Part shown: in pieces, positions 205-9,561 of the stretch | Layout: each line of letters starts with the position of its first letter | Numbering within the stretch: the stretch's first letter is position 1 | NCBI RefSeq assembly: GCF_006345805.1 | Contig: NW_021827928.1 | Location: 1-9,561 of the forward strand | DNA length: 9,561 bases | Direction: 5' to 3' | DNA from: Octopus sinensis | Taxonomy: Eukaryota | Notes under the pieces: generated by a model | Seen by the model: the letters and a program-made list of their open reading frames with translations, nothing else | Database searches by the model: none | Told to the model about the DNA's origin: nothing | Translations under genes and position numbers: made by a program

Positions 205-261
205 TATATATATATATATATATATAATATATATATATATATAATATATATATATATATAT
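205..261. repeat. (TA)n microsatellite, left flank of the 263-887 element
   Basis: Direct reading; imperfect TA run with two TAA interruptions. Confidence 0.95.
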
Positions 262-262
262 G

Positions 263-887
263 ATAGAAATATTAAAATAACTAAGTCTCTCTAAAAGAGA
301 ACAGCGGCAGCGTTCCCGGAAAATAATAGTTATCGCCATACTAATATGGCGTCTGTAGCTGCCGGTCAAGTAGTGTGGAGCGACTGACCTCCCTTGTTCG
401 AAGGTTATATGGATACAGTTTGTGTATCAAATAGCTAACTTAAGGCGATGGCCTCATGGAGCTAATAAGCGGACAGCTTTTTTCTTATTTTTATAAGAAT
501 GCCTATTAGTATGGCGATAACTATTATTTTCCGGGAACGCTGCCGCTGTTCTCTTTTAGAGAGACTTAGTTATTTTAAATTTCTATTATTGAAAACAAGT
601 GGATGTATTCCACCGAAACTAGGTAAATAAAACCATCGAACAGAGATTGTCGGAAGCGACACCTACTGGCTGGCTACGCTGCATTGAAAAGGGGCAATAC
701 CCCGAACGCGTCTGTAGCTGCCGGTCAAGTAGTGTGGAGCGACTGACCTCCCTTGTTCGAAGGTTATATGGATACAGTTTGTGTATCAAATAGCTAACTT
801 AAGGCGATGGCCTCATGGAGCTAATAAGCGGACAGCTTTTTTCTTATTTTTATAAGAATGCCATATTAGTATGGCGATAACTATTAT
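263..887 (+). mobile_element. Non-coding Penelope-like pseudo-LTR / retrozyme-like element: inverted arm (263-350) plus ~1.5 tandem copies of a 359-nt unit containing a hammerhead motif
   Basis: 349-527 matches 708-887 apart from one 1-nt indel (period 359). 263-350 is the reverse complement of 501-586 apart from two 1-nt indels. Hammerhead fold at 663-732. (TA)n on both flanks. Family assignment is inferred from the known association of minimal type-I hammerheads with tandem/inverted pLTRs of Penelope-like elements. Confidence 0.65.
663..732 (+). ncRNA. Type-I hammerhead ribozyme motif (variant core; this copy lacks one A of GAAA)
   Basis: Stem I GCUGCA(678-683)/UGUAGC(713-718), extended by 663-674/720-732. 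Core UUGAAAA (684-690). Stem II GGGG-caaua-CCCC (691-703). GAA (704-706). Minimal stem III C-GC-G followed by UC, giving a GUC triplet at 710-712. Confidence 0.65.
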
Positions 888-2510: not shown

Positions 2511-4150
2511 AGAACCACCACCACCACCACCACTACCACCACCACCTTCATCATCATCATCACCACCACCATCACCCCACGACCACTACCACAAATACTA
2601 CCACTAACACCGTCACCACCACCACCACCACTACCACCACCACTACCACCACCACTACCACCACCACTACCACCACCACCACCACCACCACCACTACCAC
2701 CACCACTACCACCACCACTACCACCACCACCACCACCACCACTACCACCACCACTACCACCACCACAACCACCACCACTACCACCACCACCACCACCACC
2801 ACTACCACCACCACCACAACCACCACAACCACCACCACTACCACCACCACCACCACCACCAACCACCACTACCACCACCACTACCACCACCACCACCACT
2901 ACCACCACCACCACCACCACTACCACACCACTACCACCACACAACCACCACCACTACCACCACCACCACCACCACCACTACCACCACCACTACCACCACC
3001 ACACCACTACACCAACCACTACCACCACCACAACCACCACCACTACCACCACCACCCACCACCACCACTACCACCCAACCACTACCACCACCACTCACCA
3101 CCACCACCACCACCACCACCACCACCACTACCACCACCGCACACCACCACCACTACCACCACCACCACCACCACCACCACCACCACCACTACCACCACCA
3201 ACACCACTACCACCACTACTACCACCACCACAACCACCACCACTACCACCACCACCACCACCACTACTACCACACCAACAAACACCACCACTACCACCAC
3301 CACTACCACCACTACTACCACACACCCACACCACCACTACCAACCCCCACAACCACAACCACTACACCACCACCACCACCACTACTACCACCACCACCAC
3401 CACTACACACCACTACCACCACTACTACCACCACCACAACCACCACCACTACCACCACCACCACCACTACCACCACTACTACCACCACCACAACCACCAC
3501 CACTACCACCACCACTACCACCACCACTACCACCACCACCACCACTACCACCACCACTACCACCACCACCACCACCACCACTTCCACCACCACGACGACC
3601 ACTACCACCAATACTACCACTAACACCGCCACCACCACCACCTTCATCATCATCATCACCACCACCATCACCAGCACTAACACTACCACCACCATCACCA
3701 CCACTACCACTACCACCACCATCACCACCACCACCACTACCACCACTTCTACCACTATCACTACCACCACCACCATCACCACCGCCACCTTCACCACCAC
3801 GACCACTACCACCAATACTACCACTAACACCGCCACCTTCATCATCACCACCACCACCACTACAACCACCACCAATACCACAACCACCACTAACACCACT
3901 ACCACCATCACCATCACCGCCACAACCACAACAGCAACAACAATCACCACCACCACCACCACCACCACCACCACCACACCATCACCACCACCACCGCCAA
4001 CACCATCACCACCACCATCAAAACACCACAACCACCACAGTAAAAACAATCACTACAACCATCACAACAACCTCAAACACAATCACCACTACCACCACCA
4101 CCACCACCACCACCACCACCAACTACCACTACCGCCGCCACCGTCGCCGC
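2511..4150. repeat. Long imperfect trinucleotide array (CAC)n with TAC/CAT/AAC variants
   Basis: Direct reading; it accounts for all poly-Pro/Thr/His and poly-Val/Gly ORFs in the track. Confidence 0.97.
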
Positions 4151-4299: not shown

Positions 4300-5512
4300 C
4301 CTCTACCTGTGTATATACGTGTGTATATACGTGTGAGTGTGTGTGTGTGTGTGCGTGTGTATGTATGTATGTCTGTATATTTGTATATATGTATGTGTGT
4401 GTGAAATATGTATATATATATATATATATATATGTATGGTAAACATCTATAGATAAGAGTATATTATTTGTATATGTATATGTATATACGTGTGAGTGTG
4501 TGTGTTGTGTGCGTGTGTATGTATGTTGTATGATATTTGTATATATGTAGTGTGTGGTATGAATATGTATATGATATATATACTATAGATGTAAACATCT
4601 ATAGATAAGAGTATATTATTTGTATATGTATATGTATATACGTGTGAGTGTGTGTGTGTGTGTGTTCATGTATGAATATATGTGCGTGTGTATGTATGTA
4701 TGAATATGTATATATATATGTAAACATCTATAGATAAGTGTATATTATTTGTATATGTATATGCATAAATGCATGTATATATGTAAATCAATACGTACAT
4801 GTGTATATATATATATATAGCTGTGTGTATATATGTATATGTGCGTGTGTATGTATGTATATCTGTATATATGTATGTGTGTGTATGAATGTGTATATAT
4901 ATGTTTTTGTATGCATGTATGTGTATATAGATATGAATATGTTTATATATGAATATACATATATTTATATACGCGTGAGTGTGTGTGTGTGTATGCGTGT
5001 GTATGTATGTATATCTGTATATATGTATGTATCTGTATGAATGTGTATATATATATGTAAACATCTATAGATAAGTGTATATTATTTATATATGTATACG
5101 CATAAATGCATGTATATATATAAATAGATACGTACATATGTAGATATATAGCTGTATATATATATATATGCATATATGCATATATTTATATAAGTATGTA
5201 TATGTATTTATGTATATATATATGTTTTTGTATGCATGTAAGTGTATACAGATATGAATATTTTTGCATATGAATATACATATATGTCTATATGTATATA
5301 TATATGTGTGTGTGTATCTCAATATACGCCTGTATATGTATGTATATATGTATGTATATGTGTATGCGTGCGTGTATGCATATGCATATACATATTCATG
5401 TATATGTTTATATATATATATGTATGTGTATATATATATGTATATACGAGTGAGACTCTCTGTCCGTGTTTATATGTGCGTTTTGCTGGCACTAGACGAT
5501 GTTTGCCAAGAG

Positions 5513-6875: not shown

Positions 6876-7100
6876 TACTCTTATACTCTTACTCTTATAC
6901 TTGTTTCAGTCATTTGACTGCGGCCATGCTGGAGCACCACCTTTAATCGAGCAACTCGACCCCCAGGACTTGTTCTTTTGTAAGCCCAGTACTTATTCTA
7001 TCGGTCTCTTTTGCCGAACCGCTAAGTAACGGGGACATAAACACACCAGCATCGGTTGTCAAGCAATGTTGGGGGCACAAACACAGACACACAAACACGC

Positions 7101-7131
<31 letters not shown>

Positions 7132-7296
7132 TACGACGGGCTTCTTTCAGTTTCCGTCTACCAAATCCACTCACAAGGCTTTGGTCTGCCCGAGGCTATA
7201 GTAGAAGACACTTGCCCAAGGTGCCACGCAGTGGGTCTGAACCTGGAACCATGTGGTTGGTAAAGAAGCCTCTTACCACACAGCCACTCCTGCGCC
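6876..7296 (-). mobile_element. Full-length tRNA-derived CORE-type SINE (octopus-like)
   Basis: Sense strand: tRNA-like head with A box TGGCTGTGTGG (7276-7286) and B-box-like GGTTCAGACCC (7233-7243), then CORE-like CCTTGGGCAAGT, an internal (TA)/(TG) run and a 3' tail ending in (AAGAGTA)-type repeats. Near-identical to 8566-8980. Confidence 0.9.
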
Positions 7297-7357
7297 TATG
7301 CATATGCATATGTTTTATTTATTATATTGTTATTACATATATATATATATATACACG

Positions 7358-8565: not shown

Positions 8566-8980
8566 TACTCTTTTACTCTTTACTCATTTACTTGTTTCAG
8601 TCATTTGACTGCGGCCATGCTGGAGCACCGCCTTTAATCTAGCAACTCGACCCCGGGACTTATTCTTTTTGTAAGCCCAATACTTATTCTATCGGTCTCT
8701 TTTGCCGAACCGATAATTGACGGGGACGTAGACACACCAGCATCGGTTGTCAAGCAATGCTAGGGGGACAAACACAGACACACAAACACACACACGCATA
8801 TATATATATATATATATCGACGGGCTTCTTTCAGTTTCCGTCTACCAAATCCACTCACAAGGCTTTGGTCGGCCTGAGGCTATAGTAGAAGACACTTGCC
8901 CAAGGTGCCACGCAGTGGGACTGAACCCGGATCCATGTGGTTGGTAAGCAAGCTACTTACCACACAGCCACTCCTGCGCC
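8566..8980 (-). mobile_element. Full-length tRNA-derived CORE-type SINE
   Basis: Same organisation as 6876-7296 and highly similar in sequence. Confidence 0.9.
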
Positions 8981-8988
8981 TATACAAT

Positions 8989-9150
8989 GGGCTTCTTTCA
9001 TGTTTCCGTCTACCAAATCCACTCACAAGGCTTTGGTCGGGCCGGGGCTATAGCAGAAGACACTTGCCCAAGTGCCACGCTCAGTGGGACTGAACCCGGA
9101 ACCATGTGGTTGGTAAGCAAGCTACTACCAACAGCACTCCCTCCTGCGCC
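8989..9150 (-). mobile_element. SINE head+CORE module, tandem copy without tail
   Basis: Aligns with 8822-8980 and carries several 1-2 nt indels. Confidence 0.85.
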
Positions 9151-9165
9151 TATATAATATATGAT

Positions 9166-9320
9166 GGGCTTCTTTCAGTTTCCATCTACCAAATCCACTC
9201 CAAGGCATTGTTGGCCTGAGGCTATAGTAGAAGACACTTGCCCAAGGTGCCACGCAGTGGACTGAACCCAAACTATGTGGTTTATTAGCAAGCTACTTAC
9301 CACCCAGCCACTCCTGCGCC
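9166..9320 (-). mobile_element. SINE head+CORE module, tandem copy without tail
   Basis: Aligns with 8822-8980. Confidence 0.85.
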
Positions 9321-9370
9321 TGTATAATATATATGTATTATATATATATAACATATATATGTATGTATAT

Positions 9371-9527
9371 ACAGATGTGGCTGTGAGTTAAGAAGCTTGC
9401 TTCCCAATCGCATGGTTCTGGGTTCAGTCCCACTGCGTGGCACCTTGAGCAAGCATCTTCTACTATAGCCTTGACCCGGCTAAATCCTTGTGAATGGATT
9501 TGGTAGATGGAAACTGAAAGAAGCCCG
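9371..9527 (+). mobile_element. SINE head+CORE module in inverted orientation
   Basis: gtggctgtgagttaagaagcttgc...ggttcagtcccactgcgtggcaccttgagcaag...aaactgaaagaagcccg is the sense strand of the same module, somewhat more diverged. Confidence 0.85.
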
Positions 9528-9561
9528 TTAATGTATGTAAATGAATGATATATTTATATGG

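Follow-up and report, generated by a model that had tools for sequence, protein, structure and literature searches.

The window analysed here is the entire 9.6-kb unplaced contig NW_021827928.1 of Octopus sinensis (9,561 nucleotides; assembly GCF_006345805.1), and the genome searched comprised 2.72 Gb. Nucleotides 263–887 of the window were found to contain a short repeat in two orientations. The left flank is a (TA)n microsatellite at 205–261, found in a repeat scan, followed by an inverted and 5'-truncated arm of the repeat at 263–349 on the minus strand, which corresponds to about nucleotides 146–239 of the unit. The arm was recognized by its exact inverted repeat, by blastn and by direct reading: nucleotides 272–346 were the exact reverse complement of 504–578, and blastn of the unit against the window matched 260–346 (minus strand) to unit nucleotides 151–236. 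The 3' end of this arm bears a tail of about 60 nucleotides and adjoins the (TA)n tract. A full repeat unit of 359 nucleotides, from one predicted cleavage site to the next, was present at 354–712 on the plus strand (unit 1–359, 100% identity in blastn), followed by a partial second unit at 713–887 on the plus strand (unit 1–174 in blastn), ending with AACTATTAT. Nucleotides 349–503 were identical to nucleotides 708–862, at a spacing of 359. The partial unit makes up the short 3' end of the insertion and runs into an (AT)n(ATAG)n microsatellite at 886–948. In most of the paralogues the unit was 360–362 nucleotides long, and a hammerhead ribozyme motif occupied its last 50 or so nucleotides. 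No open reading frame longer than 63 amino acids was found in the unit.

The window also contained other repeats. A 1.6-kb imperfect (ACC)n microsatellite with 543 copies was present at 2514–4142, with a GC skew near −1 and a GC content of 58%, whereas the rest of the window ranged from 25 to 47% GC. A complex TG/TA-rich microsatellite of about 1.1 kb was found at 4300–5450, with embedded repeats of 129 and about 330 nucleotides. A SINE-like repeat (GTTTCCGTCTACCAAATCCACTCACAAGGC...CAGTGGGACTGAACCCGGAACCATGTGGTTGG) of about 170–400 bp was present in five or more copies or fragments, which shared 61–97% identity and were located at 6889–7302, 8580–8986, 9002–9304, 9342–9542 (inverted) and 955–1021 (an inverted fragment). 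ARAGORN found no tRNA in the SINE-like repeats.

The hammerhead motif lies at 663–732 on the plus strand and was studied by direct reading, folding, paralogue counts, covariation and cofolding. Its extended stem I, read directly from the sequence, pairs 663–683 with 713–732. The outer part of stem I contained CUACU (663–667) paired with AGUAG (728–732), with A727 bulged, followed by the distal part GGCUGGC (668–674) paired with GCCGGUC (720–726), an internal loop of UAC (675–677) against U719, and the proximal part GCUGCA (678–683) paired with UGUAGC (713–718). The core contained U684-U685-G686-A687-A688-A689-A690 (UUGAAAA, 684–690), which represent positions 3–9 and hence include U3 and A8. 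Stem II (691–703) contained GGGG (691–694) and CCCC (700–703) around the loop CAAUA (695–699), followed by the 3' box G704-A705-A706, again by direct reading. The palindrome of stem III runs from 706/707 to 711, and the string CGCGUC consists of C707, G708, C709, G710, U711, and C712. The self-cleavage site GUC/U is predicted between 712 (C17) and 713 from its position relative to the core and the hammerhead rules; this position was conserved in every family representative of the alignment. The original prediction had placed stems I–III around UUGAAAA...GAA at 663–732, which direct reading found to be correct to the base, and its cleavage site between 712 and 713 agrees with the position of the core. 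Comparison of structures across families showed stem I to be open and stems II and III to be closed, which is the type-I layout. The RNA of nucleotides 655–740 folded with −40.6 kcal/mol (z = −4.5), and none of 200 shuffled sequences was equally stable. Positions 3 and 8 were Watson-Crick paired in the window copy, although the letters differ from those of the CUGANGA consensus, and the N-U-H cleavage triplet was present as GUC.

The window copy reads GAACGCGUC, whereas the full form GAAACGCGUC contains one more A, so that the shortage of one A noticed earlier was confirmed. The missing A falls between 704 and 707 and leaves the core incomplete. In place of G12-A13-A14 followed by the pair A15.1:U16.1, the window copy contains GAA-CGCG-UC, in which A14 or A15.1 is absent; due to this loss, the GAA box and helix III would not be able to form together. 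A genome search with nucleotides 579–760 found dozens of matches with 98–100% identity, most of them 183 nucleotides long against the 182-nucleotide query. The great majority of the paralogues read GAAACGCGTC, as had been predicted for them, and all of them contained TTGAAAA. The 29-mer TGAAAAGGGGCAATACCCCGAAACGCGTC, which includes GAAACGCGUC and thus the complete 3' box in the form GAAAC-GC-GUC, was found in 1167 exact copies genome-wide (0 for the reversed control) and in 1735 copies within one mismatch, whereas the A-short 28-mer was found in 38 exact copies, the window copy among them. The copies of the family (family A) were 97–100% identical to one another, and one of its intact arrays comprises the units at G000:C1:104185558–104186310.

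The A-short copies were scattered singletons, several of them inside arrays with otherwise intact units, and a propagating A-short subfamily was therefore rejected. The same scatter would suit an assembly or homopolymer error, in which case the real locus carries an intact GAAACGCGUC hammerhead; the position of the window on an unplaced contig and the existence of other homopolymer-length variants of the motif point the same way. However, 38 copies are only about twice the mean number of single substitutions per position (568 copies over 29 positions), so that their number needs no special explanation and ordinary decay fits equally well. We consider an error to be rather unlikely, although it deserves to be kept in mind. 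The counts suggest that the family has a complete U3:A8 hammerhead, of which the window copy would be a decayed or mis-assembled member, and the locus itself appears to be a dead copy with a single damaged hammerhead. The window locus is in this respect an ordinary one, a decayed and recently inserted copy of an abundant repeat.

The architecture of the insertions was studied by comparing one unit with 30 genomic loci by blastn, which gave about 21 independent two-armed insertions. The insertions were found to be head-to-head arrays with 0.3 to several units per arm, and some arrays reached at least eight units. The inner (5') junctions were variable, whereas one arm ended at unit nucleotides 171–178 and the other at 221–236 in all of the approximately 21 insertions. 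Both ends of the insertions adjoined TA-rich microsatellites. In the window and in loci L002–L030 the arm ends were located at about 174 (...AACUAUUAU) and about 236 (...UUUCUAU), each at a CUAUUAU string beside (TA)n. Unit nucleotides 150–260, where both kinds of end are located, are the most strongly conserved part of the unit. The arms with more than one unit kept uncut GUC/U junctions, which argues for a multimeric or circular template rather than a cleaved linear monomer. Such a template fits the rolling-circle idea for retrozymes, but is no proof of it. The window locus contained a single complete hammerhead, since the inverted arm comprises only unit nucleotides 146–239 and the second direct unit ends at 174; it therefore could not release a unit in cis even if the A were present.

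Craig et al. (2021, PMC8557442) describe insertions of Penelope-like elements (PLEs) in which partial tandem copies are accompanied by an inverted copy with a truncated 5' end, only one of the two ends has an extension, and (TA)n is favoured as the site. The insertion in the window showed the same pattern: a partial tandem is joined to an inverted 5'-truncated copy, a single end bears a tail, and the insertion lies in a microsatellite; the (TA)n tract at 205–261 is, in view of the bias described for PLEs, the likely target sequence. The tail of about 60 nucleotides exceeds the 30–40 bp described for PLEs. Short tandem units with a type-I hammerhead have been named non-LTR retrozymes (Cervera and de la Pena, 2020, PMC7229834), and a preprint argues that these are PLE derivatives of a non-autonomous kind (Li et al., 2026, 10.64898/2026.07.22.740005). 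Non-LTR retrozymes consist of non-coding tandem units of about 170–400 bp with one type-I hammerhead each, and the present units of 359–362 bp agree with this. Since the insertion pattern matches that of PLEs and the tandem hammerhead units match those of retrozymes, nucleotides 263–887 very probably represent one insertion of a small non-coding hammerhead retrotransposon, namely a dead copy of a non-LTR retrozyme with a U3:A8 core, from the class of hammerhead-bearing repeats that PLEs mobilize.

The genome was found to contain at least 149 matches to the GIY-YIG domain, with open frames of up to 883 amino acids and several of 781 amino acids. One open reading frame of 765 amino acids was examined and contained RVT_1 followed by a C-terminal GIY-YIG domain. 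Judged by these frames, PLEs with a reverse transcriptase and a GIY-YIG endonuclease are present and look intact. Among about ten PLE copies sampled, no sequence shared with the unit, such as a common 3' end or pLTR, was found. Two families of seemingly intact PLEs with a reverse transcriptase and GIY-YIG (L068:4141–4175, L070, L071, and L075; L073, L077, and L072) carry a U3:A8 hammerhead-like motif on the sense strand, UUGAUAA-GGUUC...GAAC(U/C)-GAAAC-AU-GU(U/A), located about 90 nucleotides before the 3' end of the PLE and the flanking (TA)n. The closing pair of stem II in this motif varied (G·U, G-C or A-U), and its stem I would be AU-rich and weak. A family-D hammerhead near the PLE of L077 was found to belong to a retrozyme insertion of its own, which shares the (TA)n tract with that PLE.

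Two loci with 5.3 kb between copies of the unit (L031 and L032) were considered as candidates for an autonomous element flanked by the unit. The insert was found to be a LINE and not a PLE, and the candidate was rejected. The same 5.3-kb LINE is nested in the retrozyme unit at L031:1343–6685 and L032:1602–6948, two places on one chromosome-scale contig separated by 47 Mb; the LINE contained a zinc-knuckle ORF1, an APE endonuclease, a reverse transcriptase and zf-RVT, and unit nucleotides 291–315 were repeated on either side of it. The pair reflects either the duplication of a composite or the movement of one.

The state of the 3:8 pair was examined genome-wide with the pattern frame xTGANyA-N{9,22}-CGAAAC-N{2,4}-GTC, in which the core letters were fixed and no stem was required. 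The pattern with C3 and G8 gave 1552 matches (165 for the reversed-pattern control) and that with U3 and A8 gave 3089 (246), whereas the patterns with C3 and A8 and with U3 and G8 gave 237 (150) and 291 (186), respectively. The unpaired C..A and the U..G counts were near the control levels and the paired combinations were favoured, with U..A outnumbering the canonical C..G about 2:1 among the pattern matches. The U..A matches spanned many families, which varied in N7, stem II (GGGG/CCCC, GAGG/CCUC, and GAGA/UCUC), loop 2, and loop 3 (GC, CG, UA, UGCA, and CGCG).

For the study of covariation, 23 representatives of about 10 retrozyme lineages were fetched with their flanks and aligned. As the copies of one young family are near-identical by descent, conservation within a family is uninformative. 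The core letters were preset by the search patterns, so that the independent evidence is limited to the stems, the palindrome and the combination at 3:8. Standard pairs were found in 97.6% of the cells, compared with 82.5% in shuffles and 31–53% with slid partners. Compensatory double changes were present in all six proximal pairs of stem I and in three of the four pairs of stem II, the two pairs of helix III were invariant, and the palindrome of loop 3 was kept in 100% of the cells. The 3:8 pair was U-A in 14 representatives, followed by C-G in four, U·G in three and C·A in two. In the sister family A2, which is 84% identical, the core was kept and the distal part of stem I was compensated. 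The proposal that the paralogues would conserve the core and the stems thus held, with the stem pairs compensated across families, and the comparison suggests that the hammerhead structure is under selection. Pattern counts and family comparison also lend support to the view, already put forward in the original prediction, that the U3:A8 pair is a compensated equivalent of C3:G8.

When the flanks were compared with the hammerhead excluded, the lineages fell into three clusters. The first cluster contained A, A2, D, and E, all of them with U-A. The second contained C1 and C2 (C-G), CA1 (C·A, 96% identical to C2), F (U-A), and UG1 (U·G), and the third contained B (C-G), G1, G2, and G4 (U-A), and UG2 (U·G). 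From these sequences, the exchange between C-G and U-A appears to be present in two or more clusters, and relatives with U·G or C·A accompany it in each of them. Families A, B, and C had several modules of the unit in common, namely a hairpin 25–45 nucleotides past the cleavage site, CUGGRGCUAA near 105 and GCCAUAU...AUGGC near 150, and are thus diverged relatives. The U·G cores of L085 and L087 (UUGACGA...) and the C·A core of L086 (CUGACAA...) belong to small retrozyme families, several of which are in tandem or inverted arrays. Being close relatives of C-G and U-A families, these cores are plausible intermediates of the compensatory switch. It is possible, and we propose it tentatively, that the sister lineages represent a natural stepwise series of C3-G8, U3·G8, C3·A8, and U3-A8, with the switch in at least two clusters, U3-A8 as the prevailing state (about 3,000 matches, compared with about 1,500) and a U3:A8 hammerhead-like motif in two PLE families.

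A second hammerhead-like string at 589–625 (UUGAAAA...GAAACUAGGUA) was rejected, since a CAA/C junction replaces the pair G10.1-C11.1 and families B and C contained only a plain hairpin at this place. The string, UUGAAAA-CAA-GUGGAUGUAUUCCAC-C-GAAAC-UAG-GUA, is part of the stretch that is best conserved between A and A2, directly past the end of the long arm, and is probably a coincidence inside a conserved 3'-end module.

Stem III had been described beforehand as minimal and near-palindromic, and it was found as AC-GC-GU, which forms a 6-bp intermolecular helix in silico. Two 71-nucleotide A-containing hammerheads cofolded with −67.7 kcal/mol, compared with 2 × −30.8 kcal/mol for the separate molecules. 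In the cofolded dimer the 7-nucleotide core and GAA were free, stem II was formed, ACGCGU made up the 6-bp intermolecular helix III, and C17 was unpaired, so that the modelled dimer would be a textbook double hammerhead. With the same intermolecular helix, only GA was left free in the window copy and the core was incomplete. Published work on retrozymes and PLEs makes a cycle of four steps likely. The tandem copies of the unit would be transcribed, and neighbouring hammerheads may join through the palindromic ACGCGU into a stable helix III, upon which each would cut after GUC. The resulting RNA of unit length, probably circularized by a host ligase, would be copied by the reverse transcriptase of a PLE. 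The GIY-YIG endonuclease would then open (TA)n, and two-sided priming would give head-to-head arrays of which one end bears a tail. Our analysis shows the anatomy of the sequence, the copy numbers, the architecture of the insertions, the covariation and the presence of PLEs in the genome; for the present family we infer the cleavage, the use of the dimer, the circular RNA and the partner PLE.

Cleavage may be dispensable for the spread of such elements, since the minimal hammerheads of PLEs are described as weak cleavers in vitro (PMC4209133) and PLE clades that lack canonical hammerheads spread nonetheless (PMC8557442). The hammerhead shape could accordingly be conserved for a different role, for example in being recognized by the reverse transcriptase or in stabilizing the RNA, with U3:A8 forms that no longer cleave; small families in which 3:8 is a C·A mismatch or a U·G wobble still build tandem arrays. 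On the other hand, U4, G5, A6, A9, G12-A14, A15.1, and C15.2 were invariant in the 23 representatives, the flanks of which were about 10–30% different, though the search patterns required these bases. The covariation of positions 3 and 8 is the signature that a catalytic fold, as opposed to a generic hairpin, would be expected to leave, and activity of U3-A8 cores in vitro has been reported (PMC3088659, citing Przybilski and Hammann, 2007). We therefore regard loss of cleavage with retention of the shape as improbable, and a hammerhead that is able to cleave remains the preferred reading for the family.

Rfam gave no hammerhead match for the window copy, neither at the gathering threshold nor at E ≤ 10, and none for one A-containing paralogue at E ≤ 10 or, in a further scan, at E ≤ 1. 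The expectation that standard searches would miss the motif was thus borne out. The sister family B, which contains the canonical core, reached 32.2 bits on Hammerhead_1 (RF00163, clan CL00010), for which the threshold is 34, and family C, also with a canonical core, gave no hammerhead match in the same scan. As B was below the threshold and neither C nor the A-containing paralogue was matched, the Rfam hammerhead model is weak for the whole retrozyme group. The missing Rfam match could also suggest a chance likeness within an unrelated satellite repeat, but this reading is in our view already refuted by the sequence comparisons, as the pattern counts were 9–13 times those of the reversed controls, covariation was strong in stems not demanded by the search patterns, and canonical sister families in the genome, including the one at 32.2 bits, had the same unit modules. 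With the stability of its fold and the counts of the 29-mer and of the U3..A8 pattern against their reversed controls, the motif at 663–732 is a genuine type-I hammerhead motif, far beyond chance. The head-to-head junctions (L010:1325–1598 and similar) gave Rfam matches to plant and animal microRNA precursors of up to 131 bits, below the gathering threshold; a microRNA identity was rejected as spurious, because these matches are caused by the long perfect hairpins of the inverted arms.

About two thirds of the pattern matches were U3:A8, and searches based on CUGANGA together with the Rfam models overlook the majority of the hammerheads of this genome. Ribozyme and retrozyme censuses for invertebrates are therefore probably too low. 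The sister families with C-G, U·G, C·A, and U-A offer a natural panel for studying the evolution of the core pair and the cost of each state in cleavage and ligation. If the U-A core is slower or more prone to ligation, selection for regulated cleavage or circularization, rather than mere tolerance, could account for its success.

Natural covariation to U3/A8 was reported in "several" examples by Perreault et al. (2011, PMC3088659), who cite the in vitro activity of U3-A8 cores from the exchange study of Przybilski and Hammann (2007). Cervera and de la Pena (2014, PMC4209133) described the U3-A8 variant in the Cercyon PLEs of Schistosoma mansoni, with about 1,300 genome matches. The U3:A8 hammerhead is thus already known, in nature since 2011 and in PLEs since 2014. 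Our literature search found no paper that ties cephalopods or the present family to U3:A8 hammerheads. Possibly new are U3:A8 as the majority state in a genome, its context in a classical type-I retrozyme rather than in "min-HHRs," and the intermediates in sister families.

Loop 2 and the helix I bulge of the present motif presumably resemble those of the hammerheads in amphibian satellite 2, in Sm-alpha of Schistosoma and in pDo500 of cave crickets, which are classical metazoan type-I hammerheads with activity as dimers. The latter are likewise in tandem repeats, of about 330–500 bp, with a weak helix III and a palindromic loop, but contain the canonical CUGANGA core. They are described as being processed through double hammerheads (Forster, 1988, cited in PMC4209133).

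The metazoan non-LTR retrozymes, as described in PMC7229834 and 10.64898/2026.07.22.740005, share with the present family the non-coding, low-GC tandem units of about 300–400 bp, the high copy number and the association with PLEs. Their type-I hammerheads are also alike, with 6 bp in helix I, 4 bp in helix II, 1–2 bp in helix III and a small palindromic loop. The core is UUGAAAA in the Octopus family and CUGANGA in theirs. The head-to-head arrangement with a single tail is documented in more detail for the present family than in the parts of those two reports considered here. The covariants of Perreault et al. (2011, PMC3088659) show the same change from C3:G8 to U3:A8 with the pair kept, in cores reported as active, whereas in our study U3:A8 prevailed in several transposon lineages of a single animal genome, in which U·G and C·A relatives were also found. 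The variant in the Cercyon PLEs (PMC4209133) shares the core covariation, the association with PLEs and the palindromic helix III, and a dimer was proposed as its active form as well. However, the Cercyon motifs are described as "min-HHRs" in which helix II is long and a base is bulged behind A9, mostly in single heterogeneous copies, whereas the present motif is a classical type-I hammerhead, in which helix II has 4 bp and helix I contains a UAC/U internal loop; it is found in tandem units of a retrozyme, and its core exceeds the canonical one about 2:1 in number.
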